A stretch of 63,987 nucleotides of DNA, filler included, from Pelomyxa schiedti (GCA_020536535.1; 12 parts of 12 records of this genome joined end to end with filler, not necessarily neighbours in it); one strand, 5' to 3'; shown: positions 1-51,319, counted from the first letter of the whole stretch. The notes: generated by a model not told the origin, from the letters alone. Made by a program: numbers and translations.

Positions 1-936
1 CCGTTTTAGAATCAAAAAGGAAAAAAAAATTCGGTTCGTTAGAAGTGTAGGGGGGAGGCTGTCGAATTTTTTCTAAGCTAAAACCTCGCGGTCTGGTATT
101 GAAAAAATTTAGCCAAATAAAAAAAATCGCCGCCTCGATGTTGTGTTGTTGTGTGGCTGCTGGCATTGGGGGAAAGACGTGTGGGGTGTATTTTGTACAG
201 GGGGTAGGTACCTCACACGGGCAGTTGCATCAGCGACCGCCATTACGGTACGCCGTAACCCCTGCGCGCGCGCATGTGCAGGTGGCCCAACTGCCGCACG
301 AGAAACAACCCTGCAATGCAGTGGGTGTAGTCTATTCGTTGACCGAGCAGTTACGTGCAGCCGGGATCGACCCCGCAAGACGACGTCCAGTACGAGGGCA
401 AGAGCGAGACAACCAGTGGTGACGTGGAAATTCATGCAACTGCAAAATCACGATGAGTTGTGTGGCAGGATGATACTGAGCCCCGCTTTATTTTCATACA
501 GATGGCCACTCAATGCACTGTGCTCTGGGACTCACAGAGCCACTGGCGTTGCCCTCGTTACTGGTACTTTTTTTTTTTTTTTTTTTTTTTTGAGCTTTTT
601 GTCTTCCCTATATATATGTTGCATCCCTGGTTTGTGCGTAAGTTGGTTTTGTTCTATCTGTGATTAACTCGCTAATCCTGGTTACAATGACCAAATAGTT
701 TTGGTGGCATTATGTTAGGCGGACTTTCTTCACATTTTCATCCTGCCATGAGACAATATTTAAAAAGGTATGGCGGGCTACGTAATCCAATGGTGCGTGG
801 GTTTTCCGATGTTATATCATATGCTTGCCGGCCTGCGCCACATGGCCACCCTACTGGAAAGTATCTAAATAACAAGTGAAACAACCCGGCACACCATGCA
901 CTCTCACTATCAATTCGCGGACGCGCAGTGCTTCGT

Positions 937-2100
937 TCACTTGAAACTTCCGCTAAAGGGGGCAAAAAACAAGAAGAAACAAAAAAAACAGTAGCCCAAC
1001 AGCAGGGCCAAGTTTTGGGGCAGGGTTGACACGTTGTGTAAACCTACCAGATTCCTAGCCGCGGATTTTGCGGAATTGTGGTGGCATGTATTCTGGGGAA
1101 TTGCAGCCGTGCCGGGCATGTTGAGGCAATGTGGAGGATGTGGGACATGCAGTTGTTCAGGGGGCTTCATGCTGGTTGCAATTTGGAGAGCATGGTTCCG
1201 CAGGGTTGGAGGGACTCCCTTGGTGTTGAGATTCTTGACCAGGTTGATCCAGTGAGCCGGTGTTGGTTTCTCTATCATTGTGGTCCGAAGCTTGTGGTGC
1301 AGGGATTTTCCTGGGCGTGCATCCAGGATTGCCCTGTAAATGTCAGTGGGGTTCCTGAGGGTAGGTGGAATCTTATCATCGAACGCGAGGTAGGTAAGAC
1401 CTTCTTTGGGTCCGTGCGGTTTGGATGCCTGAAGGCCGACAAGGCGGTGGCTACATTCCACCATGCCATGTCCAGCAGGGGTGGCACAGCCCCCATCTGC
1501 TGTGAGCGTTGTCAAATGCTCTTGCGAGGTGCAGTGGGATGGGGTGATCAGCCTGTAGATCTTTCCAATTCTGGGTTCCACACAGTCTTGAGTGGATAGA
1601 TGTCAAAGCGGAATTGGTAGGTGAGGATTGAGTTGGCCATAGAGGTTGGTTGCTAGGATTTTCATTTGCAAACCAATGACTCTGGGAATGATCTCCTGGG
1701 CTCTCCCTTGCACAACACCGAAATAACACCATCGAAAGACGGAGTCGAGAAGAACTTGTTGCTAAAACGGGCAAAAACCAGGGTGTAAAAGTGATCACAG
1801 GACTGTGCGGGATATTACTGCCACAAGGTCCAATCCAATGATGAGGAGAGATACACCTTGCGTTCTTCCCGAAAGGTTGGATTGCCCTCCTCGCCGTCAT
1901 AATCCCATGGATGTTTGGCCAGCGTAGAGTGAAGGGGTAATAAACAACTCTTGGAGGAGGATATCGCAGGCGACTCGTCGTCGGGTTTCTCCCACAGCAG
2001 AGAGTTCGCCTTTACTGTTGTGGCTCTTATCCCTCCTCTTTCTCGCCACAAGTTCAACAGCAACAACAGAGGTGCAGTGTGGTGCCAAGTCAGTGATTGA
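937..2100 (-). mobile_element. Degenerate 3' fragment of a non-LTR (L1/Tx1-like) retrotransposon ORF2, post-RT region
   Basis: Frameshifted peptides KILATNLY / NSILTYQFRFDIYPLKTVWNP / RIGKIYRLITPSHCTSQEHLTTLTADGGCATP align with the post-RT region of the element at 16.7-17.1 kb (KIVATNIYIHSILQYQCRFEIFSPSQVWHPYMTKIFHLVTPSNCTSLEHLMALKKQGGLAT). Both also share SAARNLVGL / SAAKTIVGL. Boundaries are approximate. Confidence 0.75.
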
Positions 2101-2434
2101 GATCAGACAGATATCAAATTCACATTCTTGAGCAATCAAACTCAGCCCTGCCTTGTGCTGCTGCTACTGCCACCAAACACGCAAGCAACCGCACCGTGCC
2201 ACTGTCCTCAAGTACTAAGCAATATCAATCATCATTGCATGTACAAAGTCATCCAGTTTGTTCAAGACTGATTATGCTTCCTTGACATGTCATCACCCTC
2301 ACAGACGGCTCTTCAGTACAAAAAGGAAGGGAAATTTTTTAAAGAGAACGGAAATCTTTTTCGTTGGTGCGGGGGAGACAAAAGACCGAGAAGGAGGTGG
2401 TTTCAACCTTTTTTTTTTTATTTTCACAGTGCAG

Positions 2435-5400
2435 CTAGACAAAAATGTGTGCCACAGTTTGGTACTCAGTGTCACTGGGCTTCAAGAGGATAACAAAGGT
2501 GGAACTCTTCTGTAGAGAGGGCTCTCCATAGTGTGCAAATGCAGTGACTTTTACTGGTACCCGGCCATCAGCGGGACAGTAGGATGATAGAGGTGATAGC
2601 AACTTGACACGAATGTCATACCTCCCCGTTATTGCACGCTTGAGCATATACTGAACTGGTCCTGGATTGGTGTTAGAATTCCAGTCTTTTTTGTTTTAGC
2701 ACTCTGTACCATTCCCAGGGAAGTCACGGGACATAAGTCCCCCAATCTTTGTATGATTATGGAAAGGGTGGCAATTTTCGCCGGTTGGTTCACTATGTGT
2801 TTGTGAGTGATTGCCATGCCACAACCATTCATAACACAATTTTACCTCACGCACAACGAGACATCACAAGGATCATGAGCCCACTGGATTCGAACGAGTA
2901 TATCAAGAGGTAATGGCGCATTCCGAGAAACACCATCTACGCAAAGGTTTGCAGACATGTCTGGAGTAGTACCAACGCGTTGGCACTCAAACCGTTGCAT
3001 ACAGTGGAGATCCTATTTAAGGTGGGTTAGTATTCTGCCTCTTTTAGATGCGTATTGGCCATTACCATTAACGCAGGAAGTTCCACTTGCGTAAAGCGCG
3101 GGTCCCAAATTCGAGTTAATATGATGTCGGCAATTCTGGTACACTCGTCAAACTGTTGTGGTGTTGTACTGTATGTGGCCCGAAGCAAGTCAAAATAGCT
3201 TTGTGGTTCTTCGCCTCTCTCTTTGGAGATAATTTTGTATAACGCTTGAGCAATTTGCCAGCATTCATGTTCCTCCAAGATGTAGGCAACTGTATTGGAG
3301 ATATGACGGAATTATTTTTGGGAATTTTTTTCATTCTTTGCTTTAGAGGTACCTGCTCTTTGAAGTTGGTGGTCATCACGTGAAATGTCAAGAATCGAAG
3401 TAAGAATTCTTACGGCACTATCCTTGGCACCCACAGATAACAATTTTCTTCCACAAGCAAGGTAGAAGAGTGTTGAGGAATGAGGGGAATCTTTGTGTTT
3501 GGTAAACCATTCATATCTACTAGATATCGGTAACAAACAAGATGAGAAGGGGTACAAACGACAAGGTACTAGGAACATTAAATTCTAGGTAGACTTCTTC
3601 CCAAGACGCAGTGAAATCTTCAGCATTACTAATGGTGAATTCATTGCCTGTTCAAAGTCATCCCCAAAAGAGTTTATACAGGGACTTACATGAGTCTGCA
3701 AACTGAACTTCGGATTCAGGAACGTCATCATTGTGCACATAACTGTCAACAGCAACAGTGTTCGTGAGTGGCAAAAGGGATGTGCCAGTCGCAAAGAAAG
3801 AAAGAGATGTGCTGGGAACAAGAGGGGGTTGCGCAAATGAAATAACAGGAATTTCTGTTGATGTTTCTGTTTCTTTAGCTGGGCTGCGATACGCATGGGG
3901 AACGTAGATAATTGAAGGTGCGTAATTATCCACGGGAACAGAAGTGCCAGGACTAAGGTGGTTAAGAGGTTTTTCCCGAGTAAAAAAAAACGCACCCAGA
4001 AAAAAGCACACTCAGTGCTTGTAACGTTTTCACAAGAACGAAGAGAAACAATTGTGAAAGAGGTGTTACAAGATGAACTGGTAGGAAAATAAGAACCCCA
4101 AAAAAGAAGTATAGGCTCCGAAATAAGGTCTTCAGAAAATGCCCATTAGGGGGTAGTCTCTTCAGAAAGGTTGAGGAAACTATGAAATAGTGGATAGAAA
4201 GAAACTTGCGTATTAGAACTGGGTGCAACCGAAGGAGGATATTGAGACATGAGAGCAGAGAGGTCACATTGAATACTTTGAGTTAAGCGAGTGAATGACG
4301 ATTTGCCGACACCGCTGGAACCAAGAGATACCACTGGTAATTGATTAGAATAGGTGATGCTTCCTCCAGAAGGGATCAACCTTTAATAAGTGCACTACGT
4401 TTTATGAGATACGTTTGAGTAAACAAGTCACTAATGGCACTCACAACATTGCTCAGATTTTTGCAGGAGATCTCGAAAAATTTCAAACCATTTTTAGCTG
4501 CAAACTCAGAAGCCACATTATAAGACACCTTCAAGTCGAGATGAGGAGAATGTAAACTGGCAGTTGCATACTTGTCTCTTATCCTCAATATCAAGTTTAT
4601 TGCCTAATAAAACAACATAATATGGAGGAGTGCAATTCTGTTTTATTTGGTCCAGTGTGTTGCATGCATCATTGAATGATTCTATATCAGTAATATCATA
4701 CATGAGTGCAACTCCAGCCAAAGAGCGGTAATATCTAAGTCCCATTAAGAATTCAAGAAACGTTTTAAAATAGAAGTTACGCCGTAGTTATTGTTCTAAA
4801 GCGCTCATTACCTGAAGGAATATAAGAGGATCTCAAAAAGTAAAATTTGGTACCTGCTGTGTCCCAGATTTGGAATTTAGCATCTCCTGACTTTACAATA
4901 GAAAAGTCAACCCCAATTGTACACAGATGACTCTCTGAAAACTGATATCCATCCTACATAGGAATGAAGTAAGATACCCGTAGGAGTTCCTTCATATGTA
5001 TTAACCTCTATAGTTATTTCAGCCCGTGGGGGTGCTGTTGTGGAGGCTGGGGGTGCTGCTGCTTGTTCAGGTAGAGTCATGACACCAGCATAGCACTTCT
5101 TCCTTGCGCCTAGCCCACGGATACGTAGCATATCCTGTCCAGGTCTAATTTCTTTTAAAATACTAAAGGCTTCCCCGATTTTCTGTTATGCATTAGAATT
5201 TCTCTGGTAAAAAATGGCAAACAGAAAAAGCAGAGCCAAGCATCCCACCAGTCCTAAGTCTGGCTGCCTGCTTATAAAACGCTTGTGATTGCAGGGAAAG
5301 GTCTTCAGACTTTTCGACTAAATCCTCAAGACTTAGCCCACGCTGCAGAACATGATCAACTAAACAAATCTTCATTCAAAATTTTGGAATCTTCAAGCTA

Positions 5401-8400
5401 CATACTGTTTTTGTTCATTACCCCTTCTATGGCATCTGCAGTTTGATCTTCTGCAGCCCAGTTTCTTGCAACTTTAGCACGTGAACTAGCTCTCATTGCA
5501 CTTTGGGGTGGTAGTGGGAGTGCAGCCCTTTGGGGTGGTAGTGGGAGTGGTTGTGCAGTACTTTGGAGTGGTTGTGCAAAGGAAGGCGGAGCTTCAGCGC
5601 ACGCAACTTGTTGAATATCTTCGAATAGACCCGAACCCTCCTCCTTAGCCAGTAGAGTTGGTGCAGAAAGAGGCATCTGTTGAGGTATAGACCATCCAGA
5701 TATCTCTGAATCCCAGTCTTCATCATGTTCCTCTTCTAAGTTTTCTTCTTGTTTCTCCTCCTTAAGACTTAAATCTTCACCCCAATCTCCTCCGCCAATG
5801 TCTGATTCATATTCTACAGTTTCTGGCACAACCTCGCCAGTGGCTTGAGGTTTTCCCAAATTTTCACTTGGAGTGTCTTCAAAAGCTGTGGCTGATGTAA
5901 CCGTAGGAGGCGGCGGAGAGGCAGTCAACACGGGAGGTGGAGATGATGCCCTCTTTGAGCTTTTGCAGAACGCATATAGATTTTTCTTTTTAGACACACT
6001 TTTTCGCTCCTGCTGACGTTCTATTAGAGTATGTTCAAATGGAAGTGTCACCTGAGTCTTTTCTGTATGAGGAGGTTTGGTATCAGGCATGGACTTCGCC
6101 TCAGGGATTTCACTTGGTTTGGGCGTGGTCTCACCACCAAGCTCAGAAGGTGGTAATTGGGGCGCAATGTAAAGTGAATGTGGCTCATTCTCTAATTCCA
6201 TAGACAGTGCGGAAATATCATGAACCAATTCACTCCTTTGAGTGGACTGTACTTGTAAGGTGAAGTCGTCACTCCACTCAGAAGTAAAACAAGATGCCGG
6301 CACTTCCAATTTTCTTTCTTTTTGTTCTGCGTGCAATTCCTGTGTATTATTGCAAAGCCAACCTACTGCTACTTGAGGTGAGCCAAAGCGTTATGAAAAG
6401 GAACTAACACCTCCTGGGGAGGGAAACTGGACCAATTCATAATTTTCAGGCTCCTCGAAATGTTTTCCTCTACTCATGAAGTGCCATACATGAGGTTGAT
6501 TTGTTTTCCCATCGTAGGTATTATTGAACCACTCCATTTTGCTTAGCCATAAATCTTGGACATCAGTTTTTTTCTTGGAAAGTTTGTTGCCTTCTTTTTG
6601 TCTGGATTGTTCTGTACCCCACCCCGCCCCAGCCCAAAGGAAGTCAACCTCCTATTACAGATTTTGTTTTACAAACCCCTATTTATTTCAAATAGCCTGT
6701 GTATTTCAGGGAGACTCTCTTCATCAGGTTCAATGTCATATTTCAGGTATTGTTCAAGAGAGTCAAGTACGATTAAACTAATTCCTGTTGTTAAATGTGC
6801 CAAATGTGTTAGAACTACCTAGTATTTTCAGTTACAATAGCATATTCCTGTCCCAATTTGAGAATTGCTCTGCTGGTTTCAGAGGAAATGTCCAATTCAA
6901 GGTCTTCAATCTTTCTTTGTGCCCAGTGTCTTGCTAACTACATGTATTTTACAAAAATCGAATTGATTGAAGTTTTACTAATTTGGAACCGTGAACGCAA
7001 TAGTGCATATCTAGATCTACTTGAATAGTTTTTGAGGTAGCATTGGTACTGCAGAATTAATAGTGCATCAGTTTTGACAGAAGGCTTACCCATAGTACAA
7101 TAAAATTGTGAATATTGAATCAACTGTCCAAGTTGAAATTTTCCCACAAAGGATTGACATGTTTGTAGTTGGTGCCTTTGGATATACTTCCTCTAGCTGC
7201 AAAAAATTAGCTGGAGTGGATAAAGTACCATAAACCTGATTAGGATGTGACACTTGAAGAAGTTTGAAGACTGGTTTACACATTTTCAGTGCAGCAGATC
7301 GCGCATTTTCAGAGAGTAGGTTGAAGTACATTCCACTCGATCGGTGTGACCACGATCTTGTCGATGCAAGTTGGGATTTGGAAGCAAGAAAAAGGGAATG
7401 AAACTTCATAAGCAGATTACATGTCTCGACAGAAGAGGAAACTGAAAAAATGGGAACTGGAAACTCTCGGATATCATTGTCAGCCAATCTTACAGTGGAA
7501 AACCTGGAAATAATTAGAAGAAGGGAGGAACAGGAAAGCTACCCATCACTGAAAAGAATATGAAAGGAATATGACTTGCCCGAAACTGGAGATACTTTGG
7601 ATGTGAGGGGGAGAGAACTTAAGTCAGTTCCACCATCGTAGGTTAACTTTTTAAAGTTAGGTATCATTTGAAGAATGCAAAGAAAGAACTTTCTCAAGGT
7701 TTCTAAAAAGATCCTGTGAAAGAGGATATTGCACAGGGGGCTCACATATTTCATGGAAACAATACAACTACAGAAAAATTAAAAACACCAAGTAAGTTGG
7801 AAAACGTACATCAATTGTAGAATTGGGCAAAATGGAGGAAAGGAAGTTGATAAGCTGATACTCCAGAGATAAATTCTGCCTATGCCTGCTTCTGGAGCAA
7901 TCCTGATACTCCATTATGAAAAACATAAAAAAGCTAATGATCACACACCCAGAAAATACCTATGTGGATAGGGTCAAGTACACAGTCACCTGAATTACTG
8001 CTGGCTTCGATATGGGGTATTTTTATACAAAAAAAAGTCTCAGGCTTGGTTGGACTTCCCTGAACAAGACACATTTAACATTAAAAATAGTAAACTTGAC
8101 GGACTTGCTCCAGAAGAATCAATGGAACATCAATGGGCGTTGTTGGCACATGAATCACAAAAGTAGATAACTTAAGCTTTGCAAAGGGGAGGGAGGTGTG
8201 TTCCAAATTGAGAATATACTGAGTTTTCAGTTCTGGTGATTTCCTGAAAGCAGTGCCTTCCAGAAAACTAGTAAACCACCTGCCAGTACTCTTAATCCAG
8301 GGGTTCTGGTTCACCCCGAAGGGCTGATTTATCTAGTGTTTTGTTTGTTATTGTTCAATAGGTTTTGGTAATTATATACCTCCAGGTGAAGTTGGAAGAG

Positions 8401-33169: not shown

Positions 33170-35251
33170 TGGCACATCGACGATCTATGTTGCGCCTGGT
33201 TTTTTGGATGACATATTGTCAGGCACTTTATGTTGCCTCACTCAAATTGCAATTTGTTGGCAACATTAAGTTCCCCGACCGCAACAACGTCAACGAAACG
33301 GCACTTGTTTGTTTTTCATGGAGCGTGTATTACTGTGGTTGGCATTTCATTTTCTAACACTTTCTCCAAACCCAAATCAGATATTGCTTGTTCCGCTATT
33401 AACAGTGTGCCCTCACAGAATTCTGCAAAGCATTCTTCACAATCCTGAATGGAACCAATGTTAAAAACACAGAAAACAAACAAAAAAACAGCAAGAAAAC
33501 CTCCGCCCGGTTCCCCGCATAATTGCCGGTTGTTGTGGCTTTCGTAATAACCTTCACGAAATGGTGTCTGAGGCACCTTGATGAAAAGTTACTGGTGCAT
33601 AAACAAAGGGGAATGGGTTTTCAACCTATTCCATATTATTCCAAGAGCCAAGGAGTGCAAGCGGTTACATAGTCTCTCACGTTCTAAGAAAACAAGTAAC
33701 TTGTCATGGAACTTATGAAACAGGTACTGCATGACATCAAGTCAGTAATAGAGAGAAAGAGCTTGCCATACTTGAGGTATCCCCTCAGCGCTGTCAACGA
33801 AGTTCCACAGCCTGGCCAACAGTATAAGAAGTTCAAGTTCAGACAGCCGATGTGAGGTTCTTTGTTCCTTTCCCAAGGTTGTCAATTGTGTATTTTGTGT
33901 TTAGTCGTACAGTTGTAAAATGGGAATCGAACTTCCGGATTTCTCTTTTTGCCAGGTCCTCCTTGCGGGAAGAGGAAATTACTTGCGATTGTGAAGGCAT
34001 CTCGAACGTCATCGGGCAGAACATCATGAGTTTTCGCGACGATGTCGCGCAGAGACGTAGCTTCCAGTGACGTCTTTCTTGTTGAGATTGTAAATATTGG
34101 TTGGTTTTGAGAAGCTCTACCTGCTGGTGACAGTTCCCACAAGTAGCGATCATTTTTCGTTTTTGGATGAAAAGTTCGTCACTGCCACAATGCGGGCAAT
34201 CAAATAAGTTAAACATCGGCAAGTGCATTCCCANNNNNNNNNNNNNNNNNNNNNNNNNNNNNNNNNNNNNNNNNNNNNNNNNNNNNNNNNNNNNNNNNNN
34301 NNNNNNNNNNNNNNNNNNNNNNNNNNNNNNNNNAGCTCTACCTGCTGGTGACAGTTCCCACAAGTAGCGATCATTTTTCGTTTTTGGATGAAAAGTTCGT
34401 CACTGCCACAATGCGGGCAATCAAATAAGTTAAACATCGGCAAGTGCATTCCCAACACGGCGTCGTAGCACCTTAATTAAGGTCAGCCACCGTCTCATAT
34501 GATATTAGTACCCAAGGAGACGGGGAAAGTGTAAGTTATCTATGAAAGGCTTCAGAGTGGTTCTCTCCTGTAAACTACTGATGTCAGCCTTGCTTATAAT
34601 GCAAACTACAGGAAGATTCTTGAGATGAGGTGGTAGGTCTGGTACTGTTATCAACTGAGACAGAGAGGAGCTGATTACATACCTTTCCAATGAATGTTAG
34701 GTCATATTAGACAAGCAGTTGGTTGGTTACCATATAACGTGCATTGTGTCCTCAGTATGATGGGGATCGAGGTTCGATCTGAAAATTTCTTTCAAGGAAG
34801 AAATGGAGTATTGGGCCCATCCGTCATTCACAACATAAACCTCGTAGACTGAAACCGGCAATCCAGCTAAATTATGGCATTTAATGTGGGTCCTTGGAGG
34901 AACCGGCTCCTTGGCGCAATTGGTACCAAAAATGCTGTCAATCAGGGAACTCTTCCCAGAGCTTCACGGCATTCAATAAGGGAAATACAAATGGAACACA
35001 AACCCAGTGTTACCAACAACCAGAATATTGGGTTTCACAGTGCGCCTAACCACACGTGCACATGCCTCCCTCATGTCACACTCCACATCATCATTATCAT
35101 CACCTGTACCTTATTGTTATACCTTTGTTTCATTAACTTAACACGCAAACTTCTTAAGAACTCAAAACTCACCAGGTGTGTGAACTGGCTCAGTCCCATA
35201 ATCGCCGTCAATGTCACCACCACAGCCCCGAATTACTGGCTCCGCGCTCAT
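33170..35251 (-). CDS. P-loop GTPase (MMR_HSR1/DUF697-associated type) followed by a CxxC..CxxC zinc ribbon
   Basis: Spliced KPNILVVGNTGSGKSSLIDSIFG, HVIWYVI and LPVVCIISKAD (G4-like), then CPHCGSDELF..ATCGNCHQ. The 3' end is approximate and the gene spans a scaffold gap. Confidence 0.65.
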
Positions 35252-35329
35252 GTCACAAACAAGTTTTTTTTTATTCGTTTCTTTAACGAAACGGTGTCAT
35301 CACAGAAACTGGGTGGTGAGTTGAATTTT

Positions 35330-38300
35330 TTATTCATTATTTGGTGCAGGGGGTGTTGTTCTCCTTGATTGAGAAGGGGATGGTGATGGTGTGGTTGTTG
35401 GTGATGAGGATGAGGATGTGCTAGTTGTGGTGGTTGTTGAGGTTGCAGTTGCAGTTTTTGTTGATTTTGGTGTTGCCCCAACAAGTATGCACACACAGGT
35501 TGTGTGGTCAAGTTTACCTGGGAACTTGGTGTAGTCTGAGGGCAACTTTTGCTTGGGGTTTGTTTCCATGAATTGCCTATTTGTTGGTTTGAGTTTTTTT
35601 TTTTGGATTTAGATAGAAAGAAACAAACCTGCTTGATTGTGTTGTTTGTACACAGTGCTCCAGGAGTGAGTTGACAATAGCCTCGGGGTTAGTACCATGT
35701 GTTTCAACTATACTCGCGATTTTGTTGCTCAGGTTCTTTATTCTGCGTTGAATGATTAGTTCCGGAATGATGGGATAACCCGGAAGTAGGAGGGTTACAT
35801 GAACTTCTGTGCTATGCCGAGGGTTTGTTCTGATTTTGTTTTAAATGCAGCTTCCCAGGCTGGGAACTCAGCCAGTGCCGGGTCTACATCCTTTGGTTTC
35901 ATACCAAGCAACGAGGCATCGAAGTTATCATGAACTCCATCGCTAAGAGAATGTGAGTGCTTCATTTTTGTGCGGAATGGGGGAGTGACCTCATCAGAAT
36001 TAGCAGGTCTCCTGTAAACACGTCGGCAGTTGTGATGCGGAAATTCCTCATGTCTGGTTTCAGGAATTCCCTGTACGGTCCCAATCGACCTCCTGGGTCA
36101 GTACTATCCAAGGTACAACGAGCAGTCCCACCAATGTCAATCAACATGCCTTCCCGTGAGCGCCAGCAGAATATCTTCCCATTTGTTAGGAGCGAATTGT
36201 AAAGATCCCTTTCAACCTTACAATCCCCAAGAGACATGTTGATAGAACACCACTGAGGTGCAGTAGGATTGCTTTCGCTAGCGGACTTCAGGTAGGGTAC
36301 TAGAATTCCACCCAGGAAGGTAGTTGTTCCAGCGGTTTCTCTGTGATGAGTGAGAAAGAATGTGGTGCTTTCCTCTCAAACCCTAGTTGCATTCCTTCGG
36401 ATATAGCGCGATTGCCGCAAATCAGCCCTCTAGCCATCATAAAGCCAGCCTCCCTCATGGTTTTCACGTAACTGAGCTAGAGGTTACTTTGCAAAAAAAA
36501 GAAAAAAGCAGTGAAGTTTTTGCCTGATTTCTTCAGAAACGACTTGAATGAATGTGTTTGTCACCTTTATGGCGGCGTCGCGGGGTGCAGGACCCCAATT
36601 ACCTTGAAGGGTCATTGTTAAATTTGCATTAGGGTAATGTGAAGCTCACAGCCATCAGCGACGCAATACGCTATTCTGTCATGAAAAGCAGCGATATGGT
36701 ATCGGTCACAGATTGGACTTCCCAACTAAGTTGTGGTAGTGTTCATTTGCCAAAATAAGGTGATAACTTACATGAACTTTGGTCTTGGAATCAATGGGAT
36801 ACGTTGTTATGCCCCTCCCAAAGACTCCATACATTGGTATGGACTTGCCAGCATCCGATTCGTCATCTGGCCCAGATACTGCCGCCATAATTTGTTGTGA
36901 ACCAAATTCCAACACTTTCTGGAGTTGAATTAAGTAAGGGAAACGGAGAGGGGAAAAAAAAACCCGTGGTAGAGTTTCCAGTTGTTCACACAGGGGATAC
37001 TTGAGAGAAGGATTCACAGATAAATTGATTCTAATTTTATTTAGATGCTTTAAGGGGTTGGAATGTTAACCTCAGTGTAAGAGTGCACGGGGCAGGAAGC
37101 TTTGTTTTGAGACTCTTCAAATGCACTACTCTGAGACCAGCTCTTATACAGTTGACTGGGAGAGTGTAGTATGCCAGTTGCCTCCCTCCCGTATCCATTA
37201 CACTTTATGGTTTGATGAGGGGAATTGAATGTAATGGAGCTTGTACCGTATAAACAACAGAGCATGAGGGCTTGCTGTGATATTGAATTCGAATGGGGCA
37301 CATTTGCCCATCCACTCAGGGTTGAAACCATTGGTATCTAAGAAGTATAAGATTAAATTATTAAGACATTCACGAGGGAATACGAATAGGCTTGGTTTTG
37401 TGACATGCATAATCCTCAGATTTTCCACAAACTTCAATTTGTACATATGGGTCCACAGTCCGTGTCTCGCTTTCCAATTTTGGGAGAACTCTAGCACTTA
37501 AGACCTAATCGTGGTCAACATTGTTACCACCAAATGGCAAATACCTGTATACTTAATTTGTTAACCATGTTGATTTGTTCAGGTGTATATGTTACACAGT
37601 CCTCAAAAGAAACTGGGTCAGCAGTCATAAACCACTGTTTTCTCAGGTAGCAACATGACCCATTTTGCATAAATTTACCTTAGCGAGTTCAGTATTAAAG
37701 CAAGGCCTTATCCCGTACCTTCTACAAGAGGAGCAGAAATTTCGTCATCTGGATCAATGGATATTATTTGAACACCTGCAGCCCAAGGGGAAGTTGGGTC
37801 AAATCCATGTGTTTTCTTCGTTGCATGGACTTGTGTCATAAACTTCCTAGAGTGCCTGTTTTTGTCAAGGTGTTCACTTAGGGGCGGAATTAAAGTTATG
37901 TTCTTAAAGGATACTCGACAAATTTTTCAGGATCATATTTGGTAAAGTCTTTTTCGGAGAGGCATAATATATCCCAAGGCCTAGCATCATCTGCAGAATG
38001 GATTATTACAGGAAACTTGCCAGAATTGGGTTTCTACCCAGATCTAAAGGGAAACTCTCAGATGTAAAGGCGTGGAAAAAGAAATGCTTCCCCAACGCGT
38101 CACCGACTTCATAAGATTTCCCCTACAAGAATAAGCGGCATGAAGTGAGAAGCTTAGTGAGGTACCATTAGTAACACTTTCCCTCGCAGTGAAGCTGGGG
38201 ATGGCAAGAACTTCAAATCGGGCTTACTGGTACAAAGAGGCTTGGCAATAATGCCCTCGAGAATAGAGGAAATCGCTTGACTAAGTATTGCCTTGGCAAT

Positions 38301-40274
38301 ACTTAGGCCAAGTGGAAAAGAACGGGCATTTACACACTTGTGAAGCCGGAGAGCAGTGTACGTGAAGGTGCAGTATTAGAGGAAACCTTCAAAATGTTTG
38401 TACAGTAAGAATAAGAAAATTGTATTACGCGTTAATTGTGAATGCATATTCCTTCACAAGTTTCAGGAGTTCCTTAAACTCATCTTCTTTGCTTTCATAG
38501 CAAGAAACTGTAGGCAATGTTATTCCAAGAGATCAGCTTGTGTTCCAGTTATACCTTCGAGATATCTTCCTGATCCCCTTTTTAGAAACCGGAATGTTTC
38601 TTCAAGGGAAGTCAGAGGTCGGCAGCCACGTATGTAGTAAAATGTTAAGGGAGCTGTCATATCCTAGAATTTCATTACGTAAGTGGGAAAAAAGGAACCC
38701 TACTTGGTGAATGGAGCCCATATCCGGATGAAACATTGAGTTGTGCTTGGACAACAAATAACCTTCAAATTCGTGCAAGAATAGTTCTGTTGGTACTATT
38801 CTAGAACCGGTGTCAGCTTGATTATCTCCAAATCTCCTCACAATTGCGGTGGCATCTTCCTGGGTGAACTCTGTTTCCTGTATTCATTTTTTAAATATTG
38901 GATGAAATCCTGCGAATTGAACGGAGTCTCACCTGTTGGCTTTCTTTGTGGAAAGAAACCAGGTCTGAGATAGTGAGTGTATTGCCTGCTGTAGAGGAAT
39001 ATTGTCGAAAAACTTCAGCAATTTCTCTTCTGCGCAGTAAGGCATATACGAGAACCCGGAAATTTCCGAAGTTAAGGAAACCCGGTTTATCAACTGCAAG
39101 TTCCTTAGTTTGTGGTCAAGACTAACCAGTCAAAGAAAAACAAAAAAAACCTCAAACCGAGATTTCAAACTTGATCGTGATGGCTTGAAGTTCCTGACCA
39201 TGTGTAAGGCTCAAGAAAGGAGATAAATGCACGTACAGCTTCTGTAGCAACTGAGTTGTTTGCTCGAAGTTTATCCAAGTCAAATTTTCACTTCTCCAGG
39301 CACTGTCTACAAAGCGCACCATTGGTGTTGCTCCTGACTCGACAAGGTGTTCAAGTGCTGTAACCCACTTGACTCTTTTTTCTTTACTGTCTGCTACCAA
39401 GTCGAATTGAATACTGTATCAAGAGTCAGTAGAGGTAAGTGTTTATGACTGAAGTGAATACTTCTTTGAAATGATACTAAAACTACAATCAAGCTTCTCT
39501 TGAAGGCGGCATTTCGCGAAAGACGAATTGAACTGGCCTTGCAGAAGTTCGAGAATGTGGTCCAACAGAACGAGTTTAGGATCTAAATCCACTAAGCATT
39601 GTGGTTACAGAAATCTGGAAACGTACAGCCTGGAACTACTGTAAAGCGCAAGCGGTCTCTTTCTAGAACTACAGGAGAAATTAAGAGGTAATGCTTGTCG
39701 TGGCTGAGTTTGACATTGACCCTCAAAGGGCCTTTATTTTTGCACAGAGTGAAAATATCTCCAGAAGTCTGGCCACTTAATTAATAGGACCCCCACAACA
39801 GCAAAGATACCTGCATATCCGATATCGTGTGTTTTACATTGGCATCCGCTGGGCAATATCTATTGCTATTACGCATTAGCTGCCTCATGGACACCGCACT
39901 GGACTTTGAAGTGTTAGAGAAAGAATAGATGAGAAGTGACGTTCTAATACCAAATCGAGCGTTTCATCCCCCCCATCATCTCCCGTAACAGTAGCACCGA
40001 GAATGACATTTCCAGTGGTTGAAGTGGAGGCAGCAGAATCAGTAAATGAACACGAGGCAGTGAGCCCACCGCTCCGCAAAGGAGACAAGGGGCGAGTCTC
40101 CCTCGTAGGAGGGGGTGCTACATGGCCTGCTGTTGGCATAGGTCCTGCCGGCTGAGCACGTGGTACCTCTGTTCGTATTGGTGACGACGAAGCCAAAGAA
40201 GAACTACAGGAGAATTAGATGATGGCATCAAGATATATCCAGATACATATATTTAAATTGTACAAAACGGAAAT

Positions 40275-40305
<31 letters not shown>

Positions 40306-40790
40306 AAAGAAAAAACCCATTATAGTTAGTTGTATTGAATCAAATCACCTTCTCCTGTGAGAATGGCCACCGTGGTGATGGTGATGACGGCGGCTGCTGT
40401 TTTCCTCAGTCAAGTCAGCATTGTCCAGTTCGGCCAACTTGGTGCCCAGGTCACTCCCCGAAGTGGACATGCCTGTAGGGGCACCGGACCCACAATCGGG
40501 ATTCGCTGCGGCGCCGGTTCCAGGGGTGCCCCCGCGGTTTGAGGGGGACCCCGGCGACGGCGAGGTGGACGAAGATGACGATGGCTCCTCGTCCTTGTTG
40601 CTTGTTGCTGTGTATGAGGGTGAGTGGTGCTTGCTACTGCTTGTTGCTGTTGTGGATGTGGCTGCGGATGATGTTGATGTGTGGGCGTGGGACTTGGAGC
40701 GGCTCAACCTGCCTCCCTGCGAAGACGTACAACACACAATTAGAGGGAACGACTACACGGGTGCATGGGTTGATTTACCTCGGACGACAT
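35330..40790 (-). CDS. PH-EF-PLC X/Y (degenerate)-C2 module fused to a PP2C-like phosphatase domain
   Basis: PH: FDLVADSKEKRVKWVTALEHL. X box: HQDMTAPLTFYYI..KEYAFTINAFPLILHLHVHCS. Y box: FDPTSPWAAGVQIISID and MQNGSCCYLRK. C2: TNGFNPEW..YTLPVNCIRAGLRVVHL. PP2C-like: GRGITTYP, CVADGC(G)NWG, TAGTTT, SLGDCK, GDLLILMSDGVHDNFD, PGKLDHTTCV. Confidence 0.8.
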
Positions 40791-41050
40791 GATATGCCTG
40801 GTGTGTACAAAAAACTACTTGGTCCGCTGGAGCAGTGTTGCTGAGCACCACGAAAAGTTATCTACTAACAAACTGAAAAAAACCGGAAATCCAGGAATGC
40901 GGGTGACGAAACGTACTTTCACGGCTTGGCGAATCTGGGGCAGACCCGGTCGCTCATCCTCAGACCGCGAACTTGTACTGGAAATTGTAGTTTCACTTGG
41001 ATAGGATGCCTTCCACAAAGTTTTGGTGCTTCCTTGGGGAGGAAAAAGAG

Positions 41051-41140
41051 TGCTCCGGGTGGGGATCGAACCCACGACCTCAGCATGACTCAATACTGTT
41101 CTTATAAGTACCGCGCTCTAACCAACTGAGCTACCAGAGC
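41051..41140 (-). tRNA. tRNA-Ile(TAT) with an intron
   Basis: Reverse complement GCTCTGGTAGCTCAGTTGGTTAGAGCGCGGTACTTATA-[~16-nt intron]-ATGCTGAGGTCGTGGGTTCGATCCCCACCCGGAGCA. Canonical A and B boxes; intron after the anticodon. Confidence 0.92.
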
Positions 41141-41241
41141 TTCATTTGCTTCATCTTCAAATTATTTCTGAATATTTTGCTCACTTGGAATTCTTGAGAA
41201 TAATGATTCTTTCTCTCCCTCTCGGGTGTTACGTTCTGTGT

Positions 41242-41314
41242 GGCTTCATGGCTTAGTTGGCAAAGCGTCGCTCTCGTAAAGCGAAGATCGCGGGTTCGAT
41301 TCCCACTGGAGCCT
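41242..41314 (+). tRNA. tRNA-Thr(CGT)
   Basis: Cloverleaf with anticodon arm TCGCT-CTCGTAA-AGCGA and T-loop GGTTCGATTCC, followed by an oligo-T Pol III terminator. Confidence 0.95.
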
Positions 41315-41332
41315 AATTTTTTTAAAAGTTGT

Positions 41333-42330
41333 CTAGATAATGGATTTGACAAGTCTTGCAGCGGAACTGGCGTCGGGAGCGTAGCCATCAGCTCCAATTT
41401 GCTGTTATTTTTGTGGTTAGTTAGACAGTTGTTGAGAAAGTACAACAACACATTCACATAAATGATGGGCAACAAACACAGCAACAGGGTTTTTACCTTT
41501 GCGAACTGGTCTGTAACCGGAGCGCCTCCCACAATGACCTTGACTTTGCCTCGAACACCGGCACCCACTAGGGCGTCTATAACGTCCTTCATGCGGGGCA
41601 TTGTGGTTGTCAGTAGCGCACTTAGTCCAATGATTGTAGCTCCCCGGTCCCTCACAGCTTCCACGAATTTCTCAACTGGAACGTCGGCCCCAAGGTCAAT
41701 AACATCAAATCCGTAGCCCTCAAGCATTGCCCCAACAAGGCTCTTCGTGAATGAACATTGAGTGAGTGATATATTTGGGAGAAAAGGCTTGTGCTCGTTT
41801 AGTGATACCTTTCCAATGTCGTGTATATCTCCCTTTACTGTGCCCACGGCGACTTTCACAGGCGCATTTGCCGTGGATCCCTCTGTCGACACCTCAGATA
41901 CAATGAGTGGCTTCAAAATGGCCATAGCAGACTTCATTGCTCTCGCAGAAATTAGCAACTGCAACAACGAACCCACATCAATCAAAAGTAGAAGACTGAC
42001 GAGTTGAAGTGAAGTGCATTGAAGTGAATTGCGTTGAATTGAATTGGATCGTACGATCGGGCACTGGATATATATATCGAGTAGTAGTAGTAGTAGTAAG
42101 GAGGCACAGTACAGTACCTCAGGCACGAAGTACTCGCAGATCTCGAACAGCCTGCCAGCCTCGACCATCGCGGGGATCAGGCACCCCGACACCACGTCCG
42201 CGGGGCGTGCCCCCGCCCCCAGCGCCGCCCGCGTCGCTGCCTCCGTCACCCCCGGCGCCTCCCCGTTCAGCACCGCCTCGTACAGCCGCCGTGTTGCCCC
42301 TTCCTTGTCTGCCGTCGTAGTCGCTGCCAT
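41333..42330 (-). CDS. Stand-alone cobalamin-binding corrinoid protein (MtbC/MttC or MetH cap plus B12-binding type), 3 introns
   Basis: Cap domain: LIPAMVEAGRLFEICEYFVPELLISARAM. B12 motif: GTVKGDIHDIGK (DxHxxG), then GFDVIDLG, GLSALLTTTM, VIVGGAPV, IGADGYAPDA. Confidence 0.93.
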
Positions 42331-42491: not shown

Positions 42492-43702
42492 ATGCAGGTA
42501 CCACCGCCACCAGGTGAGGGTGCCGTGTCGCCCACGAGGAACAGCACCCCAACCACGACGCGATCCATCGACGACGGGTACGGGGACGGCGACAGGGGCG
42601 GCCACAGCAGCGGGGACACTGCCTCGAGGGCGACGACAAGCCGCGCGGCGGGGGCGGGGACAGAGCCGGGGACGGGGACAGGGACAGGGGCAGCAGCAGG
42701 AGGGGGGGTCGAGGGGGGGGCGGGGGGGTTTGATTGTAGCATTTGCTTCGACGCGCCGACGGACCCGGTGGTGACACCATGCGGGCACTTGTTCTGTTGG
42801 CCATGCATCTACCAGGTTGGTTGGTTGGCTGGGCCCCCCCCGCCTTGTGTTGTGTTGTGTTGTGTTGTGTGTTGTGTTGTGTTGTGTTGTGTTGTGTTGT
42901 GTGTTGTGTGTTGTGTGTTGTGTGTTGTGTGTTGTGTGTTGTGTGTTGTGTGTTGTGTGTTGTGTGTTGTGTGTTGTGTGTTGTGTTGTGTGTGTCTCGA
43001 TGGCACTTTCGTGGTGTCACAATACTTTGTATTATATATATTGCTTCTGTGTTCCTGTGCTATTTTGTTATTTGGTTGTGTTTGTGTGCTGGTTTGACTG
43101 AAAGGGCAGTGGATGGACAGGTCAACGCAGGAGGGCAGGGCTGCTGTATGCCCTGTGTGCAAGTCGGCTGTCACTACTGATTCACTGGTTCCTCTGTACG
43201 GAAGGGGCAGAGCAACCTCATCCGATCCCAGGTTGAAAGACAATCTCGTATCAATTTTTTGATTCACTTATGCCTCATTGTATCACGTTGTAGAACACGA
43301 TCAGTGCCCGAGAGACCACAAGGAACTCGAACTGAGCCGGATCCGCAGCCAGCACCTGACTGGAACCCGGTATTTTTTTGGTCTTCCTCGTTTTGTGCTT
43401 TGGAACTTACTCTGTTACAGTTTGGATTCTTTGCACCGTTACAATTCGGATTTGGATTTGGGGGTCCTTTTTTTGGCTTCACGATGGTTTGTGAATCCCG
43501 AATTGTGGCTTCTTGCACTTATTAAAAAATCAGGCATACCCCGGACCAAGAGCACCAGGTTTTAAATGATTTATTGTTTGCTTACCTCATTCATTCCAAA
43601 GGGAACCCTAATCAAGAACGGGAAGCTCAATTGTCACGCGTTTTTTTCATGCTGGCAGTCACCTTCTTATTTTGTATTATATTTTCTTCCATGGGTTACT
43701 AA
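42492..43702 (+). CDS. RNF5/RNF185/RMA1-like C3HC4 RING E3 ligase with a C-terminal membrane anchor
   Basis: [30 protein letters not shown]...[13 protein letters not shown], an FG-rich stretch, then [18 protein letters not shown]. Confidence 0.9.
42846..42995. repeat. (GTGTT/GTGTGTT)n microsatellite inside an intron of the RING gene
   Basis: Direct reading. It lies between the GT donor after CIYQ and the AG before WMDR. Confidence 0.95.
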
Positions 43703-51246: not shown

Positions 51247-51319
51247 AGGCTCCAGTGGGAATCGAACCCGCGATCTTCGCTTTACGAGAGCGACGCTTTG
51301 CCAACTAAGCCATGAAGCC
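51247..51319 (-). tRNA. tRNA-Thr(CGT), identical to 41242-41314
   Basis: Exact reverse complement of the first copy, and both share the 5' flank ttctgtgt. Confidence 0.95.

Follow-up and report, generated by a model that had tools for sequence, protein, structure and literature searches.

What does a phospholipase C (PLC) do once the histidines of its active site are gone, and why would it be joined to a phosphatase-like domain? The question is raised by a gene of Pelomyxa schiedti, an anaerobic amoeba that lives with methanogens, which occupies positions 35330–40790 (minus strand) of a 63,987-nt stretch of DNA made up of 12 parts of genome GCA_020536535.1 joined end to end with filler; this whole stretch, as analyzed, is referred to here as the window. 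An earlier note on the same DNA had described the gene as a catalytically dead PLC fused to a PP2C-like phosphatase. The analysis presented here points to a PLC-delta-type module that is very unlikely to hydrolyze phosphatidylinositol 4,5-bisphosphate (PIP2) and that runs on, in frame and in the transcript, into a domain predicted to have the PPM/PP2C fold. We consider it probable that the former targets or regulates the latter as an active phosphatase, in a covalent and independently evolved counterpart of PRIP.

Gene Structure and Transcript Evidence

The genome is a single-cell assembly of 52.4 Mb in 5337 scaffolds (figures as given in the genome paper), and the gene lies on its contig C996. 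A search of 1.84 billion representative proteins, in which the query was a contiguous 116-codon genomic stretch (35992–36339, including one in-frame 42-nt intron), retrieved, at 100% identity, the protein KAH3743374.1 (1321 aa; P0001 below), which GenBank names "PLC delta-4". P0001 maps exactly onto the window in 31 exons running from 40790 to 35333 on the minus strand, with a stop codon at 35330–35332, giving a whole coding region of 1321 codons plus stop; all coordinates of the gene given below refer to this strand. The introns defined by this mapping are 40–62 nt long with the single exception of one of 145 nt (40204–40348), which carries a T-rich GTTTT-type repeat at 40265–40319 and at which the contigs of both DNA runs break. 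The donor of this intron, 40349, is the exact end point of one RNA contig (X1 record 4).

The RNA evidence consists of assembled contigs, rather than single reads, from two single-cell RNA-seq runs (X1 and X2) of one sample in one study. These contigs contain 13 splice joints, corresponding to introns of the 3' part of the gene, with GT..AG ends in all cases except one GC..AG, and none of the 13 is found in two DNA runs. The joint that matters most for the architecture is 37030/37071, at which a 40-nt GT..AG intron (37031–37070) is skipped in contigs of both X1 and X2 with the reading frame kept. A stop codon that would stand in frame after the C2 domain (37037–37039) sits inside this intron, and once the intron is spliced the frame is open through twelve further exons to 35330. 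In X2 record 6 (617 nt) the Y and C2 exons (37595...37071) are joined to 37030–36964 and 36918–36787, the joint being flanked by 132 and 67 letters, while X1 record 1 (1336 nt) spans 37098 to 35340 and X1 record 3 covers an X-box exon (38291–38166). It had been supposed in the earlier note that splicing carries the frame from the C2 end into the PP2C-like domain, and across 36900–37100 the RNA contigs do cross the boundary between the two with the stop-bearing intron removed. The fusion of C2 to phosphatase domain is thus in frame and transcript-supported.

It is very improbable that gene prediction or assembly artificially joined two neighboring genes, a PLC-like one ending at 37037–37039 and a separate phosphatase. 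Such a merger would fit the in-frame stop that, with the 40-nt intron kept, follows 11 codons after the C2 exon, as well as the nature of the RNA support, which comes from assembled contigs; however, the joint has GT..AG ends and a typical length, keeps the frame, and is seen in both RNA runs but in neither DNA run. Furthermore, three more loci and independent transcripts of Mastigella have the same continuous architecture, and the fused phosphatase domains form one group. The RNA joints, the paralogues and the Mastigella transcripts together largely refute the merger.

The linker between the C2 and phosphatase domains (aa 901–960; 36799–37023), delimited by the RNA contigs and the mapping, contains a 45-nt in-frame intron (36919–36963; 15 codons, no stop) that is kept in the X1 contig and removed in the X2 contig, reflecting either alternative splicing or incomplete processing of the linker. 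The GC..AG intron lies at 36472–36523 and is confirmed in both RNA runs; introns of this type make up 1.59% of introns according to the Pelomyxa schiedti genome paper. The RNA contigs differ from the genome at 35483 (A>T) and 35850 (G>A) in both RNA runs, and at 36559 and 37445 in X2 only; the DNA runs agree with the window. These differences are most simply explained by variation among individual cells or strains.

The Phospholipase C Module

The protein begins with a low-complexity region rich in Ser, Thr, Pro, and His (aa 1–225; 39862–40790), as read from the translation. Behind it, a PH domain (aa 245–357; 39332–39762) is indicated by alignment to the PH domain of PLC-delta4, by structural modeling and Foldseek, and by a weak Pfam match (PH_12, E 0.027). 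The EF-hand-like region (aa 373–512; 38722–39286) rests on a Pfam match (PF09279, EF-hand_like, E 2.3e-9) and on alignment to the EF hands of PLC-delta1. A degenerate X box (aa 513–642; 38114–38721) is placed by PLC alignments and motif positions and matches PI-PLC-X at 7.8e-13 over profile positions 68–143 of 144 only, and a degenerate Y box (aa 668–765; 37599–38038) is likewise placed by PLC alignments, its match to PI-PLC-Y (PF00387) scoring 25.8 bits, below the cut-off of 28.8. The C2 domain (aa 775–900; 37024–37571), with CTLTLR as its last residues, is indicated by a Pfam match (PF00168, E 9.6e-10) and alignment to the C2 domain of PLC-delta1, and the RNA contigs show its exons spliced together. 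Pfam scans of single exons gave weak matches only (EF-hand_like 3.9e-5, C2 0.0047, X 0.027) and none for the phosphatase exons, the short length of the exons accounting for this; a search of the Protein Data Bank (PDB) with the X-box exon by itself likewise found no match.

The best solved relative in a HMMER search of the PDB is rat PLC-delta1 (1QAS/1DJG), with E = 3e-34. A model of residues 226–905 (predicted local distance difference test score, pLDDT, 71.8) comprises a PH-type sandwich, EF helices, a barrel and a C2 sandwich, and its 39 best Foldseek matches are all phosphoinositide-specific PLCs (PI-PLCs); those to PLC-beta with a PH domain span 759 alignment columns, gaps counted. The modeled PH domain, which aligns with that of PLC-delta4, is a seven-strand sandwich with a C-terminal helix (pLDDT 74–89). 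The domain order PH, EF, X, Y, C2 is, on the evidence of alignment and predicted fold, of PLC-delta type, as the earlier note had it; the Pfam matches, the hit to PLC-delta1 and the modeled fold agree on this point.

In the HMMER alignment to PLC-delta1, gaps fall exactly at SSSHNTYL and PIIYHGYT. Relative to canonical PLC-delta4, a 10-residue deletion removes His311/Asn312 and a 14-residue deletion removes His356, and all fusion proteins, compared with four canonical PLC-delta4 sequences, are without the 10-residue His311/Asn312 block and without most or all of the His356 block. Accordingly, the claim that both catalytic-histidine segments are gone from the X box holds, with the alignments resolving the loss into two deletions. 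YYIRGCRPLTS (38639–38607) stands at the site of the His311/Asn312 segment, and SCYESKEDEFKE (38505–38470) lacks the His356 segment. Downstream of these, HLHVH (38370–38356) is found in place of SLENH, LLMGKS (38174–38114) in place of LLKGKK and, in the Y box, MTQVHAT (37839–37819) in place of LSRIYP. Only one equivalent of the calcium ligands (Asn312, Glu341, Asp343, Glu390) is kept, that of Glu341, with Asn312 deleted, Asp343 replaced by Ser and Glu390 by His. Among the residues that serve as substrate ligands in PLC-delta1 structures, Lys438 is replaced by Met, Arg549 by Gln and Tyr551 by His, and Lys440 and Ser522 are kept. Loss of the catalytic histidines is common to all six relatives with the fusion. 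With the two catalytic histidines and the majority of the calcium and substrate ligands lost, PIP2 hydrolysis by this module appears very unlikely.

An overlooked exon carrying SSHNTY and HG, which the earlier note had named as a case that could overturn its reading, was ruled out by a six-frame scan of 35000–41100, in which no HNTY-, YHG- or ENH-type motif was detected; the introns flanking the X exons are merely 40–47 nt long. Canonical PLCs, with SSHNTY, HG and ENH motifs, are encoded at three loci of the same genome (contigs C93, C828, and C625), and the presence of these ordinary PLCs identifies the fusion genes as a diverged paralogue family.

Selection was assessed by comparing P0001 with its old paralogue P0142 through the proportions of nonsynonymous (pN) and synonymous (pS) differences; dN/dS was not used, as synonymous sites are saturated (pS ≥ 0.75). 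Whereas pS ranges from 0.76 to 0.87, pN is 0.05–0.14 in every domain (X, 0.10; Y, 0.125; C2, 0.05; PH, 0.07). The low-complexity ends evolve almost neutrally, with pN of 0.46–0.60 (0.46 in the N-terminal region). The low pN in every domain against saturated pS indicates purifying selection on both halves of the protein, the dead X and Y boxes included, and the PLC module is not decaying. It is this selection, along with retention of the Glu341 and Ser522 equivalents, that speaks for a module still active as a lipase through non-canonical residues. Such activity is nevertheless extremely improbable, given that deletion of two loops has removed both general acid/base histidines and that three of the four calcium ligands, as well as Lys438, Arg549, and Tyr551, are replaced in all members of the fusion family.

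The Phosphatase Domain

The PPM/PP2C-fold domain (aa 961–1275; 35471–36798) is delimited by a family profile, an AlphaFold model, Foldseek, and invariant aspartates, and all of its exons appear spliced together in the RNA contigs; it is followed by a Ser/Thr/Pro-rich C-terminal tail (aa 1276–1321; 35333–35470), recognized from the translation and its near-neutral evolution. Metal-site aspartates were located at Asp976 (ICDRY, 36713–36699), Asp993 (ADGCNWG, 36659–36592), Asp1090 (GDCK, 36228–36217), Asp1155 (SDGVHDN, 35991–35924), and Asp1263 (GKLDH, 35518–35504), and two family-specific motifs, DPGGRLGP (36099–36076) and PDMRN (36057–36043), lie between the third and fourth of these. The domain has at least 139 relatives at less than 50% mutual identity. 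A profile built from 40 of them matches the cyanobacterial PPM phosphatase tPphA (E 2.9e-9) and aligns its D18, D34, D119, and D193 with D976, D993, D1090, and D1155, respectively; D1263 is inferred to be the third-metal aspartate from its position before the last strand of the model. All five aspartates are invariant in 40 of 40 relatives and in four aligned fusion proteins, as are C-x-W-G after the second Asp, GGR-x-GP, and D-x-RN. Presumably, these aspartates coordinate two or three catalytic metals, as their counterparts do in tPphA and PP2C-alpha. The earlier suggestion that the domain keeps its metal-binding acidic residues is thus corroborated, and their integrity makes the domain look competent.

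The AlphaFold model, built with the alignment of 40 relatives, has a pLDDT of 93.6 and a predicted template modeling (pTM) score of 0.92, and its 50 best Foldseek matches are all PPM folds, tPphA being the first. These matches include the protein phosphatases MspP and PstP as well as SidD, Lem3, and TAB1. PF13672 (PP2C_2) is matched by 27 of the 40 relatives, at best with 1.5e-7. Alignment and modeling together thus place the domain in the PPM/PP2C fold with a metal site that looks intact.

Relatives and Origin of the Fusion

Three further fusion loci with a continuous architecture were found in the P. schiedti genome, on contigs C97 (~486–5961, minus strand; encoding P0142, 80% identical), C806 (~122692–126141, plus strand; encoding P0006), and C897 (1702–6154, plus strand; X box without a histidine motif). 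The C897 locus is missing among the protein matches and may be unannotated or split. Trinity transcripts of Mastigella eilhardi encode the fusion twice (P0066/P0140 and P0019/P0141), and among the 120 matches listed only Pelomyxa and Mastigella proteins combine PLC with PPM. The fused PPM domains fall into one group (SH-aLRT 98) in a quick maximum-likelihood tree made with no root or clade test, a grouping that is consistent with one fusion before the split of Pelomyxa and Mastigella, followed by duplications.

The PPM domain is found with other modules in its relatives, including RasGEF with cyclic nucleotide monophosphate-binding and GRAM domains, SH2 with a Cbl N-terminal domain, DEP, LIM, PH-RhoGEF, and, in Mastigamoeba, carboxypeptidase. 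The DEP-bearing relatives are from dictyostelids, and one of them is named "protein phosphatase 2C-related protein". This variety of partners would fit a phosphatase cassette that is aimed by signaling domains. Named members of the family come from seven genera (Dictyostelium, Heterostelium, Acytostelium, Phalansterium, Mastigamoeba, Mastigella, and Pelomyxa), in keeping with the earlier note, which had assigned an ADGCxWG-type PP2C-related family to amoebozoans. A feature-based look-up, which works by features rather than alignment and offers a lead only, placed the domain near clusters named "PP2C domain-containing protein" (Evosea) and "PP2C-like domain-containing protein CG9801" (score 0.95); the literature on CG9801 yielded screen lists only.

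The public names of several P. schiedti proteins (P0006, P0002, P0008, P0122, and P0161) look wrong. P0006, itself a PLC-PPM fusion, is named "ABC transporter, ATP-binding protein", and several proteins with the PPM-like domain are named "cyclophilin B". Public annotation is hence wrong or incomplete on three counts, with "PLC delta-4" applied to a very unlikely lipase, "ABC transporter" to its paralogue, and "cyclophilin B" to other members.

Comparison with Known Systems

The fusion resembles PLC-delta1 and PLC-delta4 in domain order and fold, with 24–28% identity over the core. It differs from them in lacking the His311/Asn312 and His356 loops, in the replacement of Asp343, Glu390, Lys438, Arg549, and Tyr551, in its short X-Y linker, and in carrying a low-complexity N-terminus of ~225 residues and a C-terminal extension of ~420 residues that contains the PPM domain. 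The phosphatase half shares its fold and metal-binding aspartates with PP2C_2 (PF13672)/CG9801-type proteins; however, none of the listed relatives outside Pelomyxa and Mastigella (Archamoebae) bears a PLC module. The tPphA protein of Thermosynechococcus (2J82/2Y09) is both the best profile match and the best fold match (template modeling score 0.75 by target), but it is a bacterial single-domain protein of ~240 residues, whereas the amoebal domain has ~315 residues, extra helices (model residues 259–321), and invariant motifs of its own.

A functional parallel is offered by PRIP, an animal protein that was inactivated by point substitutions. As is proposed for the fusion, it pairs a PLC-delta-like scaffold devoid of lipase activity with protein phosphatases, and it binds PP1 and PP2A (PMC4064000). 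Its partners, in contrast, are non-covalent and belong to the PPP family, whereas the fusion is covalent, involves the unrelated PPM family, and has been inactivated by deletions. The different phosphatase family, the covalent link, and the other mode of inactivation make the arrangement look convergent with PRIP, and, as the mode of loss differs, the pseudo-PLC was most likely inactivated independently. All canonical PLCs among the 120 matches listed are delta-4 and none is PLC-L, in a comparison that did not include the PRIP sequence itself; the absence of PLC-L makes common descent with PRIP unlikely and leaves the resemblance as a functional analogy.

Within an incomplete coverage of the literature on PLC-PP2C fusions, protist pseudo-PLCs, SH2-PP2C architectures, and CG9801, no description of the architecture or of a function for this PPM family was found, and the P. 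schiedti genome paper does not mention the fusion. The earlier statement that no example had been described therefore stands as far as papers on the architecture are concerned; it does not stand in the wider sense, because GenBank lists the protein as PLC delta-4 and relatives with the fusion occur both elsewhere in this genome and in Mastigella. Protists often carry novel domain fusions, which tempers the interest of any one of them. Dead PLCs are known from animals, where PRIP holds PP1 and PP2A, and the fusion family would represent a second pseudo-PLC lineage in a distant eukaryote. Its architecture hints that PLC-like scaffolds and dephosphorylation are functionally linked, and it places the CG9801/ADGCNWG-type PPM family, also represented in animals, in a functional context for the first time.

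Functional Interpretation

The gene structure, the fused transcript, the residues lost and retained, their conservation, and the purifying selection are observed, as are the folds as predictions; what they imply for phosphatase activity, lipase loss, membrane targeting, and substrate is a matter of interpretation. In the interpretation that we consider probable, the first 900 residues would constitute a catalytically dead PLC-delta-type module of PH domain, EF hands, X/Y barrel, and C2 domain, and the last ~360 residues, with a PPM/PP2C-fold domain of the PP2C_2 (CG9801-like, ADGCNWG) family, would contain the sole active enzyme. The pseudo-PLC module may place or gate the PPM domain at membranes through its PH and C2 domains, and perhaps through calcium and the EF hands. 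This would be a covalent parallel to the way in which mammalian PRIP brings PP1 and PP2A to target sites.

Several observations weigh against this interpretation. The residues by which the PH domain of PLC-delta1 binds inositol 1,4,5-trisphosphate are only partly kept, and the PLC model has pLDDT below 50 at model residues 289–310 and 502–544, the remnants of the active site, making lipid binding by the barrel doubtful. The RNA contigs cover well just the 3' 40% of the gene, so that transcript coverage is limited as well as confined to assembled contigs of one sample, and a minor PLC-only isoform, terminated after C2 through retention of the 40-nt intron, may exist. The PPM domain of P0001 itself has no Pfam match at E ≤ 0.01 (PF13672, PF00481, and PF07228 included), and its membership of the PPM family consequently rests on the family profile and the fold. 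Finally, the phosphate-binding arginine of classical PP2C, five residues before the first Asp, is absent from that position, and together with the domain's own invariant motifs (GGRLGP, PDxRN) this means that the substrate may not be a phosphoprotein.

The last point leads to an alternative in which the PPM domain, instead of being a protein Ser/Thr phosphatase, would target a different phospho-ester or modification, for example a phosphoinositide, an inositol-phosphate head group, or an adduct of the AMP or phosphocholine type, and the pseudo-PLC would present the substrate and not only localize the enzyme. SidD, a deAMPylase, and Lem3, a phosphocholine hydrolase, are among the fold matches; DPGGRLGP and PDxRN are invariant in the family and absent from classical PP2C, whose canonical arginine position the family lacks; and the literature searched shows no characterized member of the family. 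The closest relatives in sequence and fold (tPphA, MspP, and PstP), however, are true protein phosphatases, the PLC barrel has lost most of its head-group ligands, and the partner domains found elsewhere (SH2, RasGEF, and DEP) point to protein signaling, such that we regard an unusual substrate as unlikely. Less likely again is that both halves are inactive and the protein is a pure scaffold, its PPM domain being a pseudophosphatase like TAB1. The occurrence of TAB1 among the fold matches and the failure of the P0001 domain to match Pfam PP2C models could be read in this way, but TAB1 has lost metal-binding residues of the kind that are invariant here, all five aspartates being retained across 40 diverse relatives and four aligned fusion proteins.

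Targeting or regulation of an active PPM phosphatase by the pseudo-PLC module remains our preferred interpretation. A more far-reaching proposal, speculative and with the odds well against it, is that CG9801-type PPM domains act in phosphoinositide/calcium signaling, either directly, on a substrate (lipid-derived or an inositol phosphate) that the dead barrel presents, or as phosphatases switched on by PIP2/Ca2+ sensing via the PLC scaffold. If so, the fusion would serve as a "Rosetta stone" for CG9801-type PPM domains, including those of animals, and the pairing of pseudo-PLC with phosphatase would be a recurrent convergent design, seen as PRIP in animals and as the fusion family in Archamoebae.

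Neighboring Features in the Window

The gene just upstream (41131–42330, minus strand) reads as a cobalamin-binding protein, with matches to PF02607 (B12-binding_2, 5.3e-17) and PF02310 (B12-binding, 1.1e-22) and a D-x-H-x-x-G motif. Intron-like stretches within it are read through in frame, and the local G+C content is higher (0.55). In an anaerobic amoeba that lives with methanogens, such a corrinoid-type protein could represent a lateral acquisition. Between this gene and the fusion gene stand a tRNA-Leu(AAG) (41050–41140, minus strand), whose length of 91 nt indicates that it is probably intron-bearing, and a tRNA-Thr(CGT) (41242–41314, plus strand), of which a further copy lies at 51247–51319 on the minus strand. 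As the mechanically called open reading frame (ORF) 41131–42330 overlaps the tRNAs, it is non-coding in its 3' part. The pile-up of DNA contigs at 41039–41100, more than 240 deep, suggests a repeated element.

Farther along, an ORF at 42492–43097 (plus strand) had no Pfam match at E ≤ 0.001; it contains a RING-finger-like C-x2-C...C-x-H-x2-C-x2-C pattern followed by a Cys/Val-rich repeat, which on the opposite strand reads as an HNTQHTT-type ORF.

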